DNA of 64,000 nt, from contig CATNEN010000039.1 in assembly GCA_950097015.1 (NCBI GenBank), positions 19,964,001-20,028,000 of the forward strand, read 5' to 3'. A program made the translations under genes and the position numbers. This document shows positions 4,453 through 44,609 of this stretch, piece after piece (position 1 is the stretch's first letter; every line of letters starts with the position of its first letter). This DNA is from Macrostomum hystrix (taxonomy: Eukaryota > Animalia > Platyhelminthes). Under the pieces are notes generated by a model. The model had not been told where the DNA came from. It did not search any database and was given only the letters and a program-made list of their open reading frames with translations.

Positions 4453-7400
4453 TCAAAAGTAGAGTATCTCAGGCTGTTGTCTATCATCTCTTGTGCTGTC
4501 CATCACTACCACCGGCTGTGAGCATGTGTCGCTCATGGATTCCATTCTCAGATAGCAGTTTGGATAAACTGAAGTTCTTCTCTGCCGATAATTTTCAAGT
4601 TCTGACGGTATCGCAATAATTGAAGCTTGCCTGGAGGCGGCAACCCGACTGCTCATACTTTTCACCATAGAACGACACCGCCGACGACCGAAAGCAAGTT
4701 GAGCATAGTTGAATAATAGCTGAAGCACCTCGAGCACTGTTAGCACACTGACGCCAATCCAAAGGCCGAGATTTCCGCCAAGGTCTGACAGCAGCTTTTC
4801 AATGGTGTAGGACAGCTCTTCGACTTCCAGATCGGCCAGGTAGCTCTCGGCTAGGACGTCAATTTTGGTAACTCTCTGCTTCAGCTCGCTCATTAGTAGG
4901 CTTTGATTTCTGGCGAATGCGCCCAGTATTGTGAATCTGCGATGTAAATTGTGTGGTGTTTATTAACTAAAAAGCTGGTCGCTTTGCTTTCTTATTGGTT
5001 GATGACTGGGGATGAGATAGAAAACTTTTAACACCCACCCCACTCCATTTTGGTCACGTGGTTTCAGCCAACCCCACTCCAAGCTTTATTTTTTAACCTT
5101 GCTGTATTGTCTTTGCTTTGAGCTTGGAAATTTATGGACCTACCTAATTCACATCGTCCCAAGGAGGTGACAACTTAATCCTCAAGATCGCACTCAGCCA
5201 TGAAAAATTGAATTCACCTGGCACTGCGGTTGGCAGCGTCGAACATGCTGTTTAGCCGGGACACCAGCACTGGGTAGGCAGCCTCCGATGGCCACTTGGC
5301 CATAGAAACAATGCTAGAATAGGACTGACTAACGCAAGGATGCGCGCAGCTAATTAAATCCGAGGTTGTCGCGGTCGCCTCCGGACTATTGAAGTAGCGA
5401 TCGTGGCACAGGCTGCGATCAGTCAGACGGTCGACCACCTAGGGTGATAAAAGGTTTTTATGCTAATTGTTGTGTCGTGCTATTGGTTGTTAACGGTTGT
5501 TTTTTTTTTCTATGCTACTTGAAGTAGACTGAAACGTTCGCGCTATTCTTGCGTCTGATTGGCTGGGCTGCTCGTCGCTTGTAATATCGATCGTTGGGTT
5601 TTTCTAGGTTTTACTAAACATGAAAAATACAAATGTACGCCATTGCTTTAAGCGCCTTTCTGATGTGACTATTAGCAAATTGAATTCTCACCTCGCGAGC
5701 TGTCCTATTCCAATTAATATAGAGCGTCTGTGACAGGTACACTAGCCAGTTCAGGTCCACATAGTGACACTGGTCCCTGAGCTGGTACTGCTCAAACACC
5801 GGATAAGCGTAGGAAATGCAGCCGCACTGAGAATATATAAAGGCCTGGTAGGAACGCATCAGGCAGACCTCTTGGTCGTAGGCGAACTCCGTCAGCTCAT
5901 TGTTGACTCGATCGCGTACTCGAACTAAGCCAGCTGATTGGTCAGCCTGGCAGGGCTTTGCGGGTGTTGGCAGACTGCGCGTCTCCAGCATCCTCACGCT
6001 GAACTGGTAGGCCTTGGCCGAAGCCATCGTGACGCCGCGAAACTCCGGCACGGGAAATGTAGTGTGCGGATGAATCACCGTCTTGATGCCTTCGACTAAA
6101 TCGAGCAGATCACCTTCGGACCGGCCGCTGGCTGCCAAAGGCGGACCGCTTGAACTGATTGCGATGTCGCTTTGACTCTCGTTGTGTGTGTACAGCACCA
6201 GCCTCATACCGTAGGAGAGCAGGTCCACCTTGATCCATAGACGAATTATAAAATGGGCGTTATAATTGACCCCTGTTAAGCCAGATGTACAGTGGCATAG
6301 AAGCAATAGATAATTTATAATAATCACTTGCAGGAGGGCTGCGGGCAATGGCAACTAATTAGGTGACAATAGACCTGCAGCTAGCGAAGAGGCAATTTTG
6401 TCTAATTCGCTGACTCCTGAGCACACAGGAGAAATAGCGTAGTCTTTCTCCAGGGGGGGGGAGAAATAGCGTGGTCTTTTTCCAGGGGGAGAAATAGCGT
6501 GGTCTTTCTCCAGGGGGGGGGAGAAATAGCGTGGTCTTTCTCCAGGGGGGGAGAAATAGCGTGGTCTTTCTCCAGGGGGTGAGAAATAGCGTGGTCTTTC
6601 TCCAGGGAGTGAAATAGCGTGGTGCTGATTAATTCAAGAAATAATTTGAGACTTAATTAAATTTAACTTTTGTTTAACTTTCCGTCGCCATAGCAACGGC
6701 GACCTTGCGACTCACCCTGTGATCAACCGTCTCGCCCATTCGGTCGTTGTGAAAAGTGTAGCAGCCACGGTACTGACTGCTGCTGTGCTGACTAAACATG
6801 CTGGCATTGCAGGGCAGGCCGTGAACTACACAATCTACAAGAATGTCCTCCAGTGGCAGATAGTAGACGCTCTCGTTGAGACTGCAGTAGCTGGAACGAT
6901 TCGGCGAATTCGCTATCAATAAATGCCAGAGTGAAAGAAGCTAATAACGCGTTCACTCAATCTTTCACTCAATAAATGCCAGAGTGAAAGAAGCTATTAA
7001 CGCGTTTGCATCTCACGCCTAGTTGCCCGAACTCAATCTCAGATAATCCAGTTCTCCAAATCTCAGATAATCCAATTCTCCAAATCTCAGATAATCCAAT
7101 TCTCCAATATCAATCCACGCAAGAAATTTTCCTACAGTTCAATGCAAACATTTTCATGTGAAACATGTGAAAAATTTTCACACCACGCAGCGCGAAGAGA
7201 CAAGGCTGGGCAGTACGCGGGCGCCGGCTGAAATACAACCTAGCCCAAAGCGGAGGGGTGGGTGTCTGGGGTGGGTGTTTACACCCAATCAGCGAGTGCC
7301 GATTGGACACAAAAACAGATTGCAGAGAATTTAGCTTGTAGATCCGCCCCTTTAGATTGTAGATCCGCCCCTTTAGATTGTAGATCCGCCCCTTTTGATT

Positions 7401-8309
7401 GTAGATCCGCACCTTTAGATTGTAGATCCGCCCCATTAGATTGCAGATCCGCCCCTTTTGATTGTAGATCCGCCCCTTTAGATTGTAGATCCGCCCCTTT
7501 AGATTGTAGATCCGCCCCTTTAGATTGTAGATCCGCCCCTTTAGATTGCAGATCCGCCCCTTTTGATTGTAGATCCGCCCCTTTAGATTGTAGATCCGCC
7601 CCTTTAGATTGTAGATCCGCCCCTTTAGATTGTAGATCCGCCCCTTTAGATTGTAGATCCGCCCCTTTAGATTGTAGATCCGCCCCTTTTGATTGTAGAT
7701 CCGCCCCTTTAGATTGTAGATCCGCCCCTTTAGATTGTAGATCCGCCCCTTTAGATTGTAGATCCGCCCCTTTAGATTGTAGATCCGCCCCTTTAGATTG
7801 TAGATCCGCCCCTTTAGATTGTAGATCCGCCCCTTTAGATTGTAGATCCGCCCCTTTAGATTGTAGATCCGCCCCTTTAGAACTCACCGTATCTTGGAGA
7901 CCAGTTTAAACAGATCCGGAAGTCGAGTAAAGTTCTCCAACCTGTACTCATCCAGGCCAGTCTCAAGCCCTTGCAACAGTCGCGACTCGAATAGTTCTGG
8001 CCTGTCAAGAAAATTTCCAGCAATACAGAAGGTCAAGTCGGGGAAATGGAAAGCAACAGACTGCGATAGCCGCTTCACAGATACCGGATACTGCTTGTAC
8101 TGGCCGAGAAGGATACTGAACTGAACTAGGAAGCCAAGAATACTAGCCACTGTTAGCAATGACCAACAGATTCTGGCGTTCAGAGTTCGCGCATTCACCG
8201 CTCTCCGAACGCCGTGCATGGAAGTCATGTCGGAGAATTCGGCTAGCAGTCGACATGACGAAGAATGACATGTTGACTGCGGCGGCGGCTGCGGCTGCTG
8301 CTGCTGCAT
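4453..8309 (-). CDS. DEG/ENaC (amiloride-sensitive sodium channel family) subunit
   Basis: Exons ~8309-7888, 7227-7184 (tentative), 6912-6716, ~6228-5692 (acceptor uncertain), 5438-5218, 4936-4453. Motifs: N-terminal TSMHG, TM1, FPDLTFC, YRGCYTF, Cys-rich CGC region, and TM2 SDLGGNLGLWIGVSVLTVLE with the GxS filter. Confidence 0.92.
6312..6427 (-). mobile_element. 5'-truncated SINE family B (structured 3' tail only)
   Basis: Aligns to 60635-60742 (TGCAGGAGGGCTGC...GCTGACTCCTGAGCACAC) and has an AT-rich tail. Confidence 0.7.
6428..6625. repeat. Minisatellite, ~29-33 bp unit GAGAAATAGCGTGGTCTTTCTCCAG(G)n
   Basis: 6-7 tandem copies with a variable G-run, in an ENaC intron. Confidence 0.9.
6684..6697. 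promoter_or_regulatory. RFX X-box-like motif GTCGCCATAGCAAC in an ENaC intron
   Basis: Matches GTNRCC-N(0-3)-RGYAAC and lies ~20 bp from a donor site. Confidence 0.4.
7336..7880. repeat. 21-bp minisatellite TTGTAGATCCGCCCCTTTAGA, ~26 copies
   Basis: Near-perfect tandem copies abutting the ENaC donor site at 7887. Confidence 0.97.
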
Positions 8310-8614
8310 GGCACTGCGCTGTCTTTAGTCTGTAAAGCAACTCTGAATTGACAGTAGAAATTATAAGCTTTTTATAATAAAGTGCCAATATTTTTAGTCT
8401 AGTAAAGTTTAACAAAACCAGATGTTCTCTTTCTATATTAATGATTGACGACCTGGGTGTAGCTTTTCTTGTCAACTCGCTCCGGCTTGTCACCAGGCGA
8501 TTGAGGAATTCGCACAAAAAAGACGGCACTCAACACCGACTCAATACTGTGTGCGAACTGAACCAGTTTAGTGCCTTGAACTGCTCTTAGGCTCTTCTCA
8601 TATATACTGAAATC

Positions 8615-9578
8615 ACAGCTCGGATCCAGTTGCAATGACAGCTCTGATCCGGTTGCAATGACAGCTCGGATCTGGTTGCAATGACAGCTCTGATCCGGTT
8701 GCAATGACAGCTCGGATCCGGTTGCAATGACAGCTCGGATCTGGTTGCAATGACAGCTCGGATCTGGTTGCAATGACAGCTCGGATCCGGTTGCAATGAC
8801 AGCTCGGATCTGGTTGCAATGACAGCTCGGATCTGGTTGCAATGGCAGCTCTGATCCGGTTGCAATGACAGCTCGGATCTGGTTGCAATGACAGCTCGGA
8901 TCTGGTTGCAATGACAGCTCGGATCTGGTTGCAATGACAGCTCGGATCCGGTTGCAATGACAGCTCGGATCCGGTTGCAATGACAGCTCGGATCTGGTTG
9001 CAATGACAGCTCGGATCCGGTTGCAATGGCAGCTTGGATCCGGTTGCAATGGCAGCTCGGATCTGGTTGCAATGACAGCTCGGATCTGGTTGCAATGACA
9101 GCTCGGATCCGGTTGCAATGGCAGCTCGGATCCGGATGCAATGACAACTCAGATGTGGTTGCAATGACAGCTCGGATCTGGTTGCAATGACAGCTCGGAT
9201 CCGGTTGCAATGACAGCTCGGATCTGGTTGCAATGACAGCTCGGATCTGGTTGCAATGGCAGCTCTGATCCGGTTGCAATGACAGCTCGGATCTGGTTGC
9301 AATGACAGCTCGGATCTGGTTGCAATGGCAGCTCGGATCCGGTTGCAATGACAGCTCGGATCTGGTTGCAATGACAGCTCGGATCCGGTTGCAATGACAG
9401 CTCGGATCTGGTTGCAATGACAGCTCGGATCTGGTTGCAATGACAGCTCGGATCTGGTTGTAATGGCAGCTCGGATCTGGTTGCAATGACAGCTCGGATC
9501 TGGTTGCAATGACAGCTCGGATCTGGTTGTAATGGTAGCTCGGATCCGGTTGCAATTGCAGCTCGGATCTGGTTGCAA
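8615..9578. repeat. 23-bp minisatellite GACAGCTCGGATCTGGTTGCAAT, ~42 copies
   Basis: Tandem array; source of several spurious ORFs. Confidence 0.97.
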
Positions 9579-10175
9579 TCGTAATAATAATAATAATATA
9601 CTAAAAGCTGCATGGTTGCTATATTGAAGCCTGTATCTGTCTGATCTTGATTCTTCAACAAAAAGTTTTCAAAAACACATTGTTTATTACATTCGGTTAA
9701 TCTGTCAAGATTTCGCTCTAATGCTGAGTCTAGAATGGGTCCATCCTACTGAATAGTAGGCTGTCTCACCATCGACAGTATTTTTCAACAAGATAGTTAG
9801 GCAATGTTCACATATCGCTTGTTTAGTTGTACTTTTAAATTGCCTATCTCATTTGACTGACGCGCGTTTCCCATCAATAAAGTGACTCAATTTTCAAAGC
9901 CCTGTTTATCGCATTCTGTTCTGAATGTTTGAAGCATGTTATGAAAATTTATTAACAAAAGGTTGTTTTCTCAGTTTTTAACAAATCAAATTAGTTTAGT
10001 ATAGCGATTTTAAGACAGTATTTTTTGCCTTTAAATTGAAAACAAACAGCTGCTTCGAAGGCTAAGATCGAAAGAAAACACAACTAGAAAACAGAAAACA
10101 TTATAAAATATACACTTGAGGAAAATTAGAACATTATTTTTCGTTGTCAGACAATTAGTCGGATCCTGTTCTTCA

Positions 10176-10344
10176 TCACTTGTCGTGACCGTGACCGTGA
10201 CCTTGGCCGTGACCGTGACCGTGACCTGTCAAGGATGAAGACGCATCAGTTTTAGGGACAATCTGTTGACACACAGGGAGTAGTTAGATTAAACTTACCG
10301 TGACCACCGCCACCGCAGACTAGTTTGCCGTTTGCTCCGCCCAT
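10176..10344 (-). CDS. 31-aa Gly/His-rich microprotein MGGANGKLVCGGGGHGHGHGHGQGHGHGHDK
   Basis: Coding exons 10344-10299 and 10225-10176 joined in frame by a 73-nt GTAAGT...TTGACAG intron. Tandem TGA TGA stop. Acceptor TCTCAG 2 nt before the ATG. AATAAA on the minus strand at 9953-9948. Confidence 0.7.
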
Positions 10345-10638
10345 AGCTGAGATTTAAAATTGCAATCTGTCCTTTACACTAGGTCCAAGTTGTGTTCAAT
10401 TCTGTTTTTGATTTTTAGGGACTATACTTAGTAGCTAACCTGGGTCTGTATTTATAGACGCATCTTATATGGGGTGGCTACTCTGGGCATGTGAGTCTGG
10501 TGTACGCCTTGTTGCCAACACAATGGAGGGTGTATAGAGAGTCAAGTATTTATTTTCTACGCCTAGACTGCACATGGCTTTATAATATAAATTATAAATT
10601 CCCAACGTAGTATATCGTGAATTTTTATTGGTTTCAAA

Positions 10639-11238
10639 TGCGAAACTTTCCACTGAGTTTATCAAGAACTGCGAAACTTTCCACTGAGTTTATCAAGAAC
10701 TGCGAAACTTTCCACTGAGTTTATCAAGAACTGCGAAACTTTCCACTGAGTTTATCAAGAACTGCGAAACTTTCTACTGAGTTTATCAAGAAATGCGAAA
10801 CTTTCCACTGAGTTTATCAAGAAATGCGAAACTTTCTACTGAGTTTATCAAGAAATGCGAAACTTTCTACTGAGTTTCTCAAGAAATGCGAAACTTTCCA
10901 CTGAGTTTATCAAGAAATGCAAAACTTTCTACTGAGTTTATCAAGAACTGCGAAACTTTCCACTGAGTTTATCAAGAAATGCGAAACTTTCCACTGAGTT
11001 TATCAAGAAATGCGAAACTTTCCACTGAGTTTATCAAGAAATGCGAAACTTTCCACTGAGTTTATCAAGAACTGCAAAACTTTCCACTGAGTTTATCAAG
11101 AAATGCGAAACTTTCTACTGAGTTTATCAAGAACTGCGAAACTTTCTACTGAGTTTATCAAATACTGCGAAACTTTCCACTGAGTTTATCAAGAACTGCG
11201 AAACTTTCCACTGAGTTTATCAAGAACTGCGAAACTTT
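10639..11238. repeat. 31-bp minisatellite TGCGAAACTTTCCACTGAGTTTATCAAGAA(C/A), ~19 copies
   Basis: Head-to-tail copies with no spacers; probably in the 5'-UTR intron of the His-peptide gene. Confidence 0.97.
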
Positions 11239-11442
11239 TATTTTAAAAGTAAAACTACATATTTTATATAGCCTTGCGTGACGGTGCATTTAAGGATAAA
11301 TACGAGCTAAAACACGTTTTAATATCTTTATGTTAGTGTTTGGAATGAGTGTACATTAATTAACCTGTCATTCAATTATGCTCAATCCACCCACACCCCA
11401 GAAATGTGCTCTCTTCTCTGAGCCCAAGAGCGAGACAGCGCT

Positions 11443-11466
11443 TGTTTATTTGGTTACCATGGCGAC
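11443..11466. promoter_or_regulatory. Forkhead-like TGTTTAT + RFX X-box GTTACCATGGCGAC, candidate promoter of the His-rich microprotein gene
   Basis: Motif matches; a minus-strand donor CAG|GTTAAT at ~11365 would define a non-coding first exon. Confidence 0.55.
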
Positions 11467-11944
11467 CACAGTTAAGGTCAACGAATAGGAGCGATGGGCT
11501 AGAAGGGTTAGGCTACCCTCTGTCTGTACTTCTTTCTAACCCAAGGTGAAATAATGTTTTTCTCTCTCTCGACAAAGCGCGGAATGATGGATACAATAGC
11601 ATAGATGAAGCATTTTATAAAGGCGAATATTTACTTTGACAGCCTGCTATATACTGAATGCTTATAGAATAGCTGAAAACACTGTGACATTTAATTGGTA
11701 CCTGCGTGATAGTAAATTATGAGCTTGATAAAACAACATATTTTCCACATGGAAACCAGGGCTTTAGTCGTCACTTGTCAGACAGAGTGGCTGAGCATGG
11801 GTGGGGCTGGGTGTGTCACAGACGTTTCAATAAAGCTAAACAATGAACCTATTGAATGCAACTTATGTGTATTCGACGAGGTACTGCAGCTTTTCAGATG
11901 GATTTGCGAGACAGAAGATAGGATTTAAAACAGCTAGCAGTTCG

Positions 11945-12720
11945 ATTTGGAAAAAATGAGAGATTTGAAAGGCCTTAGTGATGGAATTTGAAACAATGAG
12001 AGATGGGATTTGAAACAATGAGAGATGGGATTTGAAACAATGACATATGGAATTCGAAACAATCAGAGATGGGATTTGAAACAATGAGAGATGGGATTTG
12101 AAACAATGAGAGATGGGAACAGGAAGATCTGAGTAATGGGATCAGTGAGACCTGAGAGATTGGATCAGGGAGACCTGATTGATGGGATCAGGGAGACCTG
12201 AGTGATGGGATCAGGGAGACCTGAGTGATGGGATCAGTGAGACCTGAGAGATGCGATCAGGGAGACCTGAGTGATGGGATCAGTGAGACCTGAGTGATGG
12301 GATCAGTGAGACCTGAGTAATGGGATCAGGGAGACCTGAGAGATTGGATCAGGGAGACCTGATTGATGGGATCAGGGAGACCTGAGTGATGGGATCAGGG
12401 AGACCTGAGAGATGCGATCAGGGAGACCTGAGTGATGGGATCAGTGAGACCTGAGTGATGGGATCAGTGAGACCTGAGTAATGGGATCAGGGAGACCTGA
12501 GTAATGGGATCAGGGAGACCTGATTGATGGGATCAGGGAGACCTGATTGATGGGATCAGGGAGACCTGAGAGATGGGATCAGGGAGACCTGAGAGATGGG
12601 ATCAGGGAGACCTGAGAGATGGGATCAGGGAGACCTGAGTGATGGGATAAGGGAGACCTGATTGATGGGATCAGGGAGACCTGGGAGATAGGAACAGGAA
12701 GACCTGAGTGATGAGACTAG
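11945..12720. repeat. Adjacent 22-bp (GAGAGATGGGATTTGAAACAAT) and 23-bp (GATGGGATCAGGGAGACCTGAGT) minisatellites
   Basis: Two tandem arrays sharing a GATGGGAT core. Confidence 0.93.
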
Positions 12721-13289
12721 AGAGTTCAAGGGATGGGATAAATGAGACATGGGAGACGGGATTCTATAGATGGGGTTGGAAATTGATGAAATGACTTAGT
12801 AAAACTTAAAAAGCAGTTTTTGAGTGATAGGAAAAATGGATGACCATTCCTGAGTTTTCCTGTAATGATTTAGCAAAACAATGCATACTACTATTTTTGA
12901 ATGAGTTTTACTATTGGCAAGTAGTATTGATCAGCATTTTAATGTTAATAAAAAATATAAGCAAACAAGAAAAATTTTACGTCGTTTTTATTTAAGAAAG
13001 TCGTGCGATTGCATTTTATCGAAGGCAAAGACGCAACAAGTAATTGTCAAGTAGTTTATTAAAATCACATTAACTTTTTTATAACTATTGAAAAATCACA
13101 AATCATAAATAACTTAATTAATAATTGGCAATTTAACTTGGGTCGAGTGAAAAAAATAACTTTGCTCAAAAAATCCATCGGTTGGCTCTGAAATTCAGAA
13201 TTTAAAGAAAAGAAATGTACGATAAGAGGGCCTGGTGATAGTCCCAATTCAATACTACGGGAATAATATAACTATAATTTATAAATATT

Positions 13290-14921
13290 TCACCTAGCTA
13301 AGTTGGGCCAGAGAGAAGCGAGGAGAGGTAGGAGGAGACGATACGAGACGAGAGGAGAGGAGAGGAAAGGAGAGGAGAGGAGAGGAGAGGAGAGGAGAGG
13401 AGAGGAGAGGAGAGGAGAGGAAAGGAGAGGAGAGGAAAGGAGAGGAGAGGAGAGGAGAGGAGAGGAGAGGAGATGAAAGGCGTGGAGAGGAGAGGAGAGG
13501 AGAGGAGAGGAGAGGAGAGGAGAGGAGAGGAGAGGAGAGGAGAGGAGAGGAGAGGAGAGGAGAGGAGAGGAGAGGAGAGGAGAGGAGAGGAGAGGAGAGG
13601 AGAGGAGAGGAGAGGAGAGGAGAGGAGAGGAGAGGAGAGGAGAGGAGAGGAGAGGAGAGGAGAGGAGAGGAGAGGAGAGGAGAGGAGAGGAGAGGAGAGG
13701 AGAGAGGAGTGGAGAGGAGATGAGAGGAGTGGAGAGGAGAGGAGAGGAGATGAGAGGAGTGGAGAGGAGAGGAGAGGGGATGAGAGGAGTGGAGAGGAGA
13801 GGAGAGGAGAGGGGATGAGAGGAGTGGAGAGGAGAGGAGAGGAGAGAGGAGTGGAGAGGAGAGGAGAGGAGAGGAGAGGAGAGAGGAGTGGAGAGGAGAT
13901 GAGAGGAGTGGAGAGGAGAGGAGAGGAGAGGAGAGTAGAGGAGAGGATAAGAGAGGAGAGGAGTGCAATCAGGGAACTCACATAGCTGGGTATCGTCATT
14001 TCTCGCAGCATCATCAGTTGCACCGGTGTCGGCTGCAGTTTCCATCGCTGGAGTAGGTTCTTCTAGCAGAAATTAGTAAGGGGCAGCTTGTTTCGTTGGA
14101 AAACTGTTTTGTTTCTGTGGTAATTTCTACTGATGGATTGATGTACTTACCAGGACCTTCTTGACTGCCAGTCTGTGGCGGATCGTCTTCTTGTTTCACT
14201 GTTGAAGCTGCCGAAGCTGCCGCCGCCTCGACCGGTTGTTCTGGTTCGGCGGCCTTGGCGCCGACTTGGCGCTGCTGGCCTGCTGCAAGCGAAATCGAAC
14301 TTTGCTATTTCAGGAAACTGTTTTTATAGATACAATTGATGAAAGAATGGAAATTGAAAACACTCTAGTTGATTGAGATTAGTCAGGAACTGGAGAGGAG
14401 AGGAGAGGAGAGGAGAGGAGAGGAGAGGAGAGGAGAGGAGAGGAGAGGAGAGGAGAGGAGAGGAGAGGAGAGGAGAGGAGAGGAGAGGAGAGGAGAGGAG
14501 AGGAGAGGAGAGGAGAGGAGAGGAGAGGAGAGGAGAGGAGAGGAGAGGAGAGGAGAGGAGAGGAGAGGAGAGGAGAGGAGAGGAGAGGAGAGGAGAGGAG
14601 AGGAGAGGAGAGGAGAGGAGAGGAGAGGAGAGGAGAGGAGAGGAGAGGAGAGGAGAGGAGAGGAGAGGAGAGGAGAGGAGAGGAGAGGAGAGCAAAGGAG
14701 AGCAAAGGAGAGGAGTGGAGAGGAGAGAAGAGGAGTGGAGAGGAAATGGCAGGAGAGAGAATAGGAGAATTTTAAAGAGCTGATTGACTGTGAGAAGTTA
14801 TAATTGTGCGGGTTTTGACATGGATTTGTCTCTTATAGTCTATGGCAATTAGAAGCGAATTAGAATACTCACAATCCTGACTTCCGACAGCTGCGGCTGA
14901 CTTGCTTCCTTCGCAGCCCAT
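13290..14921 (-). CDS. ~89-aa acidic Ala-rich protein beginning MGCEGSKS (predicted myristoylation + palmitoylation)
   Basis: Exons 14921-14873, 14282-14151, 14062-13982 and 13297-13290 (last exon tentative). All introns are GT-AG and phase 1. Product MGCEGSKSAAAVGSQDSGQQRQVGAKAAEPEQPVEAAAASAASTVKQEDDPPQTGSQEGPEEPTPAMETAADTGATDDAARNDDTQLSR. Minus-strand AATAAA at ~13060-13055. Confidence 0.75.
13320..13963. repeat. (GAGAG)n pentanucleotide microsatellite
   Basis: Long purine tract in intron 3 of the MGC gene. Confidence 0.98.
14392..14760. repeat. (GAGAG)n pentanucleotide microsatellite
   Basis: Near-perfect tract in intron 1 of the MGC gene. Confidence 0.98.
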
Positions 14922-15111: not shown

Positions 15112-15250
15112 GTCATTAGCAACCGCGGTTACCATGGAGGCAAATGAGTCAGTTCAATTATTGCGCACGAATTTTTCAAACTTGTCTTTTTGCTTTCTTT
15201 AGAACTCTTTGCGTATAATTAGCGTTTGCCTTGTTTGTCGTCATAGCAAC
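15112..15250. promoter_or_regulatory. Cluster of X-box-like motifs with an adjacent forkhead-like site upstream of the MGC gene
   Basis: GTCATTAGCAAC (15112-15123), GTTACCATGGAGGC (15128-15141), and TGTTTG overlapping GTCGTCATAGCAAC (15232-15250). TATA-like TATATAA on the minus strand near 15001-15007. Confidence 0.5.
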
Positions 15251-17576: not shown

Positions 17577-20500
17577 ATGGAATCACCAAAGGTTGACATC
17601 GGCCTGATCGACAGCGGCATTCAGAGGCGACAGAGCCGGAGGAAGATCTCGTTCCAGGAGCTGGAGGCCGACTGCCTTGCTGCCGATGACGACGGCGACT
17701 CGGGCTGCGGCGATTTCGACAAAAATCTGGCGCACAATTGTAGGGCCTCGTTCGCCGAGTCAGTGTTCAGCAGCAACTCGGCTAATGAGTCCAATTTTGG
17801 GGCGGCACTGTGCAGGTGAGTGAGTAGGGCAATGTGGAGTTCGAGTTTTTTTGGATCAAGAGGGATCCCAAGGGGATTTGGGAGAGAGTGAGAGAGGGAG
17901 AAAGATAGGTGGAGAGGGGGAGAGTGAGAGAGGGAGAGAAGAAGAGAGGGAGAAACATAGGTAGACGAGAGAGGGAGAGAGAGAGTGGGGATAAAGATAG
18001 AGTGAAGTGAAAAAATTCCTTTCTAATCTTTCTCATGTAGAAAGAAGGATTCAATTTGTTAAGGTACATTTCTAAAGCGAAAGTTGTAAGTATGACGTTA
18101 TAAAAATCTTAACAGCAACTTTTACTGTTTAATGACAGAGAAAATCTTCAAAACAGTGTGTTACGAGTTATGGTCGGGGAAGGGGCATTGTGGCAAGGTC
18201 GGGTGTTAACTGGAATTAACTCGTTTCCTCGCCTTGCTAGTGCAGCCACGCATAGTTAGGGAGTGCATTTCCTAATTTCCTCACGAAAACTCCCATTGCA
18301 CTTCTGCCCACATCTACAACACTGTGAGAAGGGAAATAATGAGCTATAGGCTAAGGCTATAAGAGTGAGCTACTGAATAGTATATGAGCATGCACTTAAA
18401 GGCACTTGCAACACACATGCGCCCCACCCTCCCTGAGGCCTTCAGAGCCAATTTCCGCCATTCGTCACCCTGCAACTGAGACCCCTGAAGGACTGGGGGG
18501 TGCGCCTTTTGCGGGAGTTGCTTTGACAACCGCCAGCCGCGGAACAGCTGCGGGCACTGCTGAATTCTTTCACTTTTCTTTCATACCTTCAAACAATGCT
18601 GTTCTCCTGGCTAAATTGCTTGTGTTAAGGATCCGACAAGATTTCTCATTCACTTGTGCCACAATGCCCATTCCCCGACCATAACACACTGTTTTGAAGC
18701 TGTTCTCTGTCATTAAACAGTAAAAGTTGCTGTTAAGATTTTTATAACGTCTTACTTACAACTTTCGCTTTAGAAATGTACCTTAACAAATTGAATCCTT
18801 CCGCCCTATTAGAGAAAGATTAGAAAGGAATTTGTTCACTTCACGATATTGGCTGTAAAGACAACTACTATTCCCATATGGTTAGATAATTCCCAACCCT
18901 TACAGTTATACATATAATGTGTCATAAAACAGTGAGCCATTATCAGTTTAATTATTATTTGTGCATAATTATCTACCTGCTGTAAAATCTGTCAAATTAA
19001 AAAACCCTCCCTTCCACAGCCTCAGCCCCGCCACAGAGGATGACTGCCGGCTGGCCCTGAAAGCCTGGGCCAGGAAGCGGCTTCTACTGTGCGGCGGCAA
19101 GATCAAAGAGATCAAATTCCGCCATATCAGCCAACGGAAGGCCTTCCAGGTAAAATAAAGGGAGATGGTGAAGGCTGGGGGTTGATGGCCATTGCTCGAG
19201 CCGAAAATAGAATTCCAAATTAGAAACTGGATTCGGCGCAGAGCTCACAACGGGTACAAATGTACTTTTATTATCGGCTATCGAGAGATAAGGCCAAGTA
19301 CAACAATGAAATTTTATTTTCATCAAGTTAACAAGCAATGCGCCGTCTGCACGCAATGCAGATTCAGAATGAGAAAGAAGGGAAGGAAATACTAATGTAA
19401 AAAGTTTTTTGCCTTGTAAAGCCTTTCCATTATTTGAATTAAAAACATAAATTAAAGCATTCTTACAACCCAGGCATACATTTGCCCTGGCTAGACGGAC
19501 AGGACGGATCGCCTGAAAATTTTAACGAAAAATAATTCCATAGCGGAACTTAGCAACCGAACTAGTCTCAATATAATTGGTTAATATAACAATTATAGAG
19601 GCCTATTATCCAAATCCTTAACGCCAGATCGATAGCATCAACTACTTTGCCTTAGCAACCAGTTGCCTTAGTAACCAGTTGCCTTAGTAACCAGTTGCCT
19701 TAGTAACCAGTTGCCTAAGCAACCAGTTGCTTTTGTAACCAGTTGCCTTAGTAACCAGTTGCCTTAGCAACCAGTTGCCTTAGCGACCAGTCGCCTTAGC
19801 AACCAGTTATGAAATTTTTGTAGCATAATCAGCTATCATTCTCGCAGTACTCGCTGGACACCTACGTCGAGACGCGCAACGTTCACTCGGCCGTCGAGCC
19901 GTTGGAGAACTTGAAGAACGCCTGCCGCCAGTTTCCGCAGTCGCTGTGGGACATCGAGTGCCGCCCAGGCGGTCGGCCATTCGAAAGCTCCGAGCAGCGC
20001 GTGGCGATTCCCGGCACGGCGCGGGTCATTCTCTGCTCCGCCTGCAACGGGCGCGGCTGGCAGGTGTGCGCCGCCTGTCACGGCCGCGGACGGGCAGACT
20101 GCGACACCTGCTTCGGCGGCAACTTCGTGGGGCCAGCCGGTAGTCGCCGCCTGGAATTCCCGTCGCAGGCTGTCTACGGGCGGCACGCGTGTCACGAGTG
20201 CAATGAGACTGGCGAGTACTGCTGTCCCTACTGCAGCGGGGCGGGCCACCTGCACTGCAAGGCCTGCATTGGCAAGGGCAAGCTGCAGCGCTACATGCAG
20301 CTCACTGTGCGATTGTGAGTCCGACGGATTACGAAAACCCGGAAATTTTGTTTTGCATAATTAATTAGATTGGCAGCCGACAGCCGTAGCCATCAAAATC
20401 CAGAACAAGGCCTAAAATTTTCCGCTCCATTTGACGAGACAGCTTCCTGAATCACAAAACATCAGCATCGTCGAGATTCAACGATTCTGGTCGGGGGTGT

Positions 20501-44267: not shown

Positions 44268-44609
44268 TATTCTACAATCGGTGGCTTGACAGTCGAGGCG
44301 CTGACAATCAAACCAGTCCTGACGGCCGCCGGTCGACAAATCGACGAATTTCTGGCCGAATTAGAGCCCTGCATTCCGTCATCTGTGGCGTCTTCGGTTG
44401 CCATGGTAACTAAAACTGCAGCAGTCGCAGTCGCTGCCGCAGCTCCAAGTTCCAGCTCGTTGGCTGTCAGCATAGACGTCGGCGACGATAATAACGACGA
44501 AGGCGAGGACGCCTGGGGACTCGGCGATGTAGACGACGATGCGACTGATGCTGAGGCCGTCGTCGGTACACCAGCTCTCAATGGCGGCGCAACTGACGAC
44601 CAGCGATAA
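36365..44609 (+). CDS. SCYL3: SCY1-like pseudokinase 3 (PACE-1)
   Basis: Exons 36365-36580, 38537-38722, 38815-38985, 39308-39681, 39821-40081, 40707-41126, 42254-42521 and 44229-44609. MG start; LKSVRHPSILKF; LAFLH...HNNV...GHWKL pseudokinase motifs; HEAT region LIPELLIGLRD; acidic tail with WGDDW / AWG motifs. Confidence 0.9.
36712..37032 (+). mobile_element. tRNA-derived SINE family A, full length
   Basis: A box TAGCCTAGTGG, B box GGTTCAATTCC, central GTTCACCCAGCTGTTAAATGGGTAC, (ATT)n tail, TSD TATAAGGA at 36704-36711 / 37033-37040. Second copy at 50561-50865. Confidence 0.9.
40118..40410. repeat. Purine-rich composite minisatellite (GAGATGAGACAGGGG...)
   Basis: Tandem degenerate ~15-17 bp units in SCYL3 intron 5. 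Confidence 0.85.
40565..40632 (+). mobile_element. tRNA-like SINE head fragment
   Basis: A box TAGCCAATTGG and B box GTTCGAATCC at tRNA-like spacing; no intact cloverleaf. Confidence 0.5.
41140..42150. repeat. 21-bp GT-rich minisatellite GATTTGGGTGTGGGGTTTGGT, ~48 copies
   Basis: Fills SCYL3 intron 6, starting just after the donor. Confidence 0.96.
42690..44100. repeat. ~22-bp minisatellite CATCTAGAAATCCCC(N7) arranged as ~67-bp trimeric higher-order repeats
   Basis: Three variants (TTTCAATA, TTTTAATC, TATCCAGCC) alternate in order. Confidence 0.95.

Follow-up and report, generated by a model that had tools for sequence, protein, structure and literature searches.

The window analysed here, i.e. 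the whole 64,000-nt stretch of Macrostomum hystrix DNA, carries on its minus strand, between 10400 and 9907, a very small two-exon gene (hereafter the mini-gene), the 31-codon open reading frame of which is assembled by removal of a 73-nt intron. A preliminary description of this DNA had proposed such a hidden, spliced ORF from the letters alone, and its ATG, its frame and its codon count all agree with our translations, as do the double TGA stop and the downstream AATAAA, beyond which RNA-derived contigs come to an end. The features are listed below in window coordinates, all of them on the minus strand.

10449 to 10456, minus strand: TATAAATA box, read from the sequence and located 49-56 nt before the 5' end at 10400
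10299 to 10400, minus strand: exon 1, 102 nt, from the translation and from contigs of X3 and X1 over 10297-10400
10400 to 10345, minus strand: 5' UTR, 56 nt, with no upstream ATG and with an in-frame TAA 12 nt 5' of the ATG
10344 to 10342, minus strand: start codon ATG, with G at -3 and G at +4
10344 to 10299, minus strand: coding part of exon 1, 15 codons (MGGANGKLVCGGGGH) plus the first base (G) of a Gly codon
10298 to 10226, minus strand: intron, 73 nt, GTAAGT...GACAG, GT..AG, phase 1
10179 to 10225, minus strand: exon 2, coding portion, in which two bases complete the Gly codon before HGHGHGQGHGHGHDK (15 codons)
10173 to 10178, minus strand: tandem stops TGA TGA, from the translation
9907 to 10172, minus strand: 3' UTR, with contig ends at 9933 (X2) and 9907 (X3) and ORFs of 2-10 codons only
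9948 to 9953, minus strand: AATAAA polyadenylation signal, 15-41 nt 5' of the observed 3' ends

The mature RNA measures ~421 nt (~0.42 kb) and divides into a leader of 56 nt, an ORF of 96 nt and a trailer of ~270 nt, the AATAAA at 9953-9948 being the only nearby one on the minus strand, ~220 nt past the stop. An exon-by-exon check identified the 31-codon ORF as the first and only sizeable one in the transcript, with 2-10 codons in each of the other AUG-initiated frames; left unspliced, the ORF from the ATG at 10344 would end within the intron after 30 codons. The intron is set inside a hexamer repeat, the (GGTCAC) period of which carries on over the exon junction, and TRF reports a 6-nt repeat of 7.2 copies at 10184-10226, which is the coding part of exon 2. 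The intron is unstructured (fold z-score -0.01), and a search of Rfam for known RNA families gave one match only, at 17 bits and far under its gathering score; on these two grounds a mirtron or snoRNA within the intron was ruled out. The mini-gene is a single-locus gene, in that the other genome matches to the query were hexamer arrays on contig C5 only, and the genome search found neither a paralogue nor an intronless copy.

The evidence for a gene at this locus is the RNA and not the ORF, since the ORF is no better than chance (see below). Contigs of three public runs (X1, X2, X3) from two studies were aligned to 7800-11700. In X3 (organism B), a 448-nt contig of depth 276 lies with 0 mismatches on 9907-10223 and 10297-10400, and in X1 (organism A, the other study), a 164-nt contig of depth 5.4 carries the same joint, with one mismatch somewhere in 10297-10400. 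The joint, described for both as 10223/10297 ('skips 73, CT..AC (cut +2)'), is exactly that of a GT..AG intron at 10298-10226, so that the junction predicted at 10299/10225 is carried by contigs from two studies. X2 adds a 286-nt contig on 9933-10218. Across X1-X3, contig depth is zero on the intron, on 7800-9895 and on 11206-11700, which indicates that the contigs derive from RNA and not from DNA. The depth of 276 leads to the same conclusion, as it would be impossible for single-copy DNA in a run of 47 million letters, given a 220-Mb genome with one intron-bearing copy. Depth over the mini-gene is ~5 in X1 and X2 versus 276 in X3, where length-times-depth arithmetic gives the transcript a share of roughly 0.2-0.3% of all letters, with contig depth a poor measure of expression. 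Both spliced contigs terminate at 10400, where the X3 contig passes directly into Illumina adapter; many cDNA molecules therefore end there, and 10400 is the 5' end of the transcript or very near it. The product of the mini-gene is an independent two-exon polyadenylated mRNA, spliced at precisely the predicted positions and, in one data set, abundant.

Judging by its position relative to this 5' end, we infer that the TATAAATA box is a promoter element and the mini-gene TATA-associated; closer in, at 10427-10422 (about -27 to -22 relative to 10400), there is a weaker GTATAG. Reading of the 240 bp upstream of the mini-gene start revealed no MRE (TGCRCNC). The preliminary description had instead put the start much farther upstream, with a candidate non-coding first exon, spliced from ~11365 to an acceptor at 10346 and lying next to a forkhead and X-box motif. 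The RNA contradicts this exon: in X1-X3 no contig lies on it (11365-11466), nor on any part of 11337-11467, and the X3 and X1 contigs are colinear through 10346 to 10400, one of them ending there at adapter, which disposes of an 11365/10346 splice. The AG said to stand 2 nt 5' of the ATG does exist (10348-10347) but is unused, the contigs reading through it to 10400. A trans-spliced leader attached at that AG was likewise rejected, as none was seen in the contigs and a leader whose last letters were AUG would not be in frame at this position.

The motifs themselves are present, with GTCGCCATGGTAAC at 11466-11453 followed by AAATAAACAAG, but they do not hold up as the promoter of the mini-gene. 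The X-box sits 1,053 bp upstream of 10400, beyond a 600-bp minisatellite and in a region without RNA support, and for these reasons the X-box/forkhead element is not assignable to the mini-gene. In genes of the RFX/FoxJ1 (ciliary) regulon the X-box typically lies within a few hundred bp of the transcription start; the mini-gene has no such X-box near its start. Over the whole window the RFX X-box consensus has 11 matches versus 0.05 expected, and seven of these are the units of one minisatellite at 19662-19803. The other matches include one at 6684-6697, inside the DEG/ENaC gene described below, and a perfect palindrome, GTTGCCATGGTAAC, at 44397-44410.

These elements formed part of a wider proposal, in which the mini-gene would encode a myristoylated and palmitoylated membrane sensor of metal or pH, expressed from a forkhead and RFX promoter through the non-coding first exon and partnered by a DEG/ENaC channel. 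The proposal gains from the agreement of 11453-11466 with the X-box consensus and from the excess of such matches in the window, and it loses on the upstream part of the transcript: two data sets place the 5' end at 10400, the proposed acceptor is read through, the proposed exon is without a contig, and the X-box stands behind the minisatellite. Its remaining elements, the channel and the lipid anchors, are taken up in turn below.

As had been claimed, the next same-strand gene downstream is a DEG/ENaC gene. Four exon ORFs between 8309 and 4456 on the minus strand match Pfam ASC (PF00858), three of them above the curated cut-off and the fourth (6677-6919) just under it, at 21.3 versus 23.6 bits. 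This order of genes counts for a channel partner, but a functional tie finds nothing beyond adjacency in its favour, and adjacency says little. The mini-gene has its own 3' end, with a poly(A) site that precedes the first coding exon of the channel by ~1.6 kb, and among the contigs of X1-X3 none shows a joint from the mini-gene towards 8309. Nor does any contig of these runs lie on the channel's first coding exon, as against a depth of 276 on the mini-gene, although such a hole by itself proves nothing. That the RNA might be a leader or uORF of the DEG/ENaC mRNA is ruled out, for the dominant form, by its own AATAAA and by the 3' ends at 9933-9907.

Tandem repeats surround the mini-gene on both sides. 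The minisatellite mentioned above (10639-11238) consists of 19.4 copies of a 31-bp unit with 95% matches, 240-840 bp upstream of the mini-gene start. On the minus strand its unit contains TGATAA, a GATA-type core, and X3 contigs of depth 4-8 lie on it in both strands. An enhancer role is conceivable, and such arrays are abundant in the genome. Further minisatellites occupy 9000-9579 (23-nt units), 11980-12713 (22-/23-nt units) and 13290-14700 (10-/15-nt units), both strands of the last being open over long stretches, as (SPLLS)n / (GEERR)n. A second ORF with an MG start, MGCEGSKSAAAVGSQD, lies at 14870-14921 on the minus strand and runs up to a GTGAGT donor; its N-terminus is of the myristoyl plus palmitoyl type, TATATAAT stands ~80 nt upstream of it, and X-box-like sequences occur at ~15130-15250. 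In addition, some contigs of organism A have only the hexamer run at 10183-10227 in common with the window and then continue into Gly/His/Leu-rich or unrelated sequence, which indicates that other transcripts with similar repeats are expressed.

Repeats of this kind also bear on whether the mRNA encodes anything. Taken alone, the ORF does not stand out statistically: on this strand (GGTCAC)n can be read through in each of the three frames and only ~14 unique codons precede the repeat, from which we estimate that an ORF across the repeat is to be expected about half the time. On C5, a non-coding hexamer array of ~2 kb (within C5:954521-957561) can be read in one frame as (VT)n over 700 codons, so that long open frames over hexamer repeats evidently arise without coding in this genome, which is filled with mini- and microsatellites (five arrays in 9000-13000). 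Comparison of organism A with the window is without power, the 3' UTR differing at four of 246 nt (~1.6%); over the 40 coding nt under the X2 contig 0 differences are listed, again with too little divergence for power.

Sequence searches yielded no relatives that could speak for coding. A query consisting of exon 1 read on into the intron was run against 1.84 billion representative proteins and returned two long repeat proteins and no short relatives. The first of the two, P0001, is a protein of 745 residues, and the unspliced 30-codon ORF (10255-10344, minus strand) aligned with one of its repeat units, reading ADGKLVAAG...FNLARYTPDGSLD. Identity was 64% across 28 residues and E, on the scale of the whole library, 9e-6, with a score that sums several repeat units. 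Half of this match is coded by the intron, i.e. by residues that are removed in the RNA, and P0001 was accordingly set aside as a homologue and its match taken as chance. Our literature search for a histidine-rich peptide of Macrostomum found nothing relevant.

One reading of these observations is that the locus produces an abundant spliced and polyadenylated non-coding RNA, or a young transcript, in which the (GGTCAC)n ORF is incidental and any peptide unstable and functionless. The chance expectation for the ORF, the wealth of satellite arrays and the lack of any homologue to the read-through query or paralogue in the genome all suit it, and we hold it possible, if somewhat unlikely. It sits less well with the form of the RNA, which is short, very abundant and TATA-associated; its first AUG is clean and preceded in frame by a stop, and its ORF closes with a double stop. 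Long non-coding RNAs are usually rare transcripts, abundant ones of such shape are unusual, and a capped cytoplasmic RNA of this sort is scanned and translated by default. Translation is favoured here because the RNA is short, polyadenylated and very abundant with a clean leader, because its first AUG stands in good context and a double stop follows directly past the repeat, and because neither an RNA family nor a structure was found. Gly-His runs elsewhere in the genome, at the loci examined (see below), also argue against an incidental frame in that all lie within real proteins. On this evidence we regard translation into a functional peptide as slightly more likely than not.

The predicted peptide of 31 residues comprises 14 Gly, seven His and two Lys, with one each of Cys, Asp, Gln, Asn, Ala, Leu, Val and Met, such that Gly (45%) and His (23%) together make up 68% of it. 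It begins with MGGANGK, followed by Cys10, a Gly4 spacer and a tail of the form (HG)4-Q-(GH)3-DK, in which seven alternating histidines form five H-G-H motifs. It would lack a fold, and its net charge at neutral pH would be approximately zero. The in-frame stop upstream of the ATG excludes a longer precursor.

A small Gly/His-rich product of high and variable abundance brings to mind host-defence peptides, and the mini-gene could on that account encode a secreted antimicrobial or structural peptide like shepherin, histatin or holotricin. A text search for GHGHGH also turned up a paper that reportedly concerns cationic disordered antimicrobial peptides. Secreted Gly/His peptides are marked by a signal peptide or precursor, and the mini-peptide has neither: its N-terminus, MGGANGKLVCGGGG, lacks a hydrophobic core and hence a signal peptide, and it has no propeptide or dibasic site. 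Together with a net charge close to zero, this makes a secreted peptide most unlikely.

The N-terminus had been interpreted instead as the acylation site of a membrane anchor. Its residues G2 G3 A4 N5 G6 K7 conform to the PROSITE-type N-myristoylation rule, G-{EDRKHPFYW}-x(2)-[STAGCN]-{P}, Lys7 and Cys10 are in place, and the genome encodes an N-myristoyltransferase, NMT (PF01233 at C1:17879023-17880575, 181.6 bits). The rule is a weak guide here, as a Gly-rich N-terminus satisfies it almost automatically. Moreover, myristate is usually added co-translationally, to a nascent chain that has emerged from the ribosome, and a chain of 31 residues does not span the exit tunnel of the ribosome; the usual route, during translation, would therefore be inapplicable, leaving only post-translational modification. 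Lipidation of the peptide is thus doubtful, though conceivable from its sequence.

Two known proteins show what such a peptide would resemble if it were lipidated. Calcimembrin (C16orf74), which carries an N-terminal myristoyl group and S-acyl groups on Cys7 and Cys14, is likewise small and disordered, with Gly2 and a nearby Cys. Calcimembrin has 76 residues and a calcineurin-docking motif, whereas the mini-peptide is limited to 31 residues with a His run and lacks any known docking motif. Hisactophilin of Dictyostelium combines N-myristoylation with many histidines to bind membranes in a pH-dependent manner (PMC9245636), and this myristoyl switch in a His-rich protein is the precedent for the wider sensor proposal introduced above. 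The mini-peptide likewise combines a consensus N-myristoylation signal with many histidines; hisactophilin is a folded beta-trefoil of ~118 residues that sequesters the myristoyl group, which a 31-residue Gly/His chain cannot do, and we claim no homology. With a chain that is not modifiable co-translationally in the usual way, a 5' end at 10400 and a polyadenylation site of its own, the sensor in its full form, with its distal promoter, first exon and channel partner, strikes us as very improbable.

The histidine tail can be set against other Gly-His runs of the same genome. Runs of four or more Gly-His codons are rare, with 16 hits to a pattern of four in a row across the genome and 23 in a reversed control. 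Six loci with such runs were examined (C7:8935401, C1:4146603, C24:2891783, C38:3343872, C38:4544665 and C25:7634148), and they comprise two ZIP genes, one ZnT/CDF gene, the complex I subunit NDUFB3, a TRPM-like channel and one ORF of G/H/Y repeats. In the ZnT/cation-efflux transporter the run is located in the His loop. The ZIP and ZnT genes of this genome have (GH)4-6 runs in codons of GGTCAC type, as in the mini-gene. The G/H/Y-repeat ORF, which is without a Pfam match, repeats GHGHGQSFGRGHG.

The flatworm NDUFB3 gene (L019:954-1277, plus strand) is apparently intronless and starts with MGGDGHGHGHGH, i.e. with MGG and then a (GH)4 run, like the mini-peptide. Its ORF and that of the mini-gene are identical over the first 10 nt (ATGGGCGGAG). 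An origin of the mini-gene from NDUFB3 is nonetheless unsupported, as these 10 nt at the ATG and the repeat are all that the two have in common, and the unique part gives a blastn E of 0.23. NDUFB3 also belongs, with S100A9 and SLC39A7, to the substrates of the histidine methyltransferase METTL9, in which HxH tracts occur in tandem. The METTL9 motif is HxH with a small x (A, N, G, S or T), and methylation reduces the zinc binding of alternating-His tracts (PMC13027442). The mini-peptide tail, with five H-G-H in a disordered stretch and with G/Q flanks, is of this form, and a METTL9/DREV gene is present in the genome (PF05219 at C39:18356717-18358269).

In the loops of ZIP (SLC39) and ZnT (SLC30) transporters and of plant IRT1, histidines likewise alternate with small residues in disordered stretches that bind or sense metals, as in IRT1, where metals are sensed by an HGHGHGH loop (10.1101/2024.09.03.611018). 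In these proteins the His run is a loop of a multi-pass transporter, whereas here it is nearly the whole product of a 31-codon gene, and a sequence relation can be demonstrated for the repeat only. By analogy with this literature and with the location of the other runs in the genome, it is plausible that (GH)n is a metal-binding or metal-sensing motif here also. As the runs sit in classes of protein that bind zinc or are substrates of METTL9, a free-standing His loop appears the most economical reading of the mini-peptide.

Metallothioneins offer a parallel in gene architecture: they, too, are very small, abundant and TATA-driven, with short introns and a product that is mostly metal ligand. 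Their ligand is Cys, at about 20-30% of residues and clustered in CxC/CxxC motifs, whereas that of the mini-peptide would be His; it has one Cys in 31 residues and no CxC, and no MRE was seen. The mini-peptide thus falls outside every family tested and, by analogy, would in function come closest to the His loop of a transporter or to an HxH tract of METTL9 type.

We suggest, with a probability of roughly 0.55, that the mini-gene encodes a translated His-cluster peptide that binds metal or protons and is possibly lipidated. The abundant ~0.42 kb mRNA (10400 to 9907, minus strand) would be translated from its first AUG into the 31-residue peptide, in effect a free-standing copy of a zinc-transporter histidine loop, the imidazoles of which would reversibly bind Zn2+, Cu2+ or Ni2+ as well as protons. 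The peptide may then serve as an abundant small buffer, chaperone or sensor; N-terminal lipidation may hold it at membranes, and histidine methylation of the METTL9 type may tune it. In its most elaborate version it would be a lipidated histidine-switch peptide, the smallest known myristoyl- or palmitoyl-anchored element responsive to metal or protons and one made in bulk; protonation, metal loading or METTL9 methylation would determine how it binds membranes or buffers zinc. We consider this version improbable; were it true, the histidine loop of a transporter would here have been set free as a stand-alone gene.

Genes of this size escape annotation based on ORFs, and yet in a public RNA data set the contig of the mini-gene is among the deeper ones. 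Should its RNA prove non-coding, the locus would be an instance of a transcribed microsatellite imitating a microprotein that looks designed. Were the peptide produced, it would amount to a minimal, His-based counterpart of metallothionein or of the sensing loop of a zinc transporter, of some relevance in flatworms, where metal handling is poorly known. It would also be a natural and simple setting in which to test how HxH tracts act together with lipid anchors and with histidine methylation.
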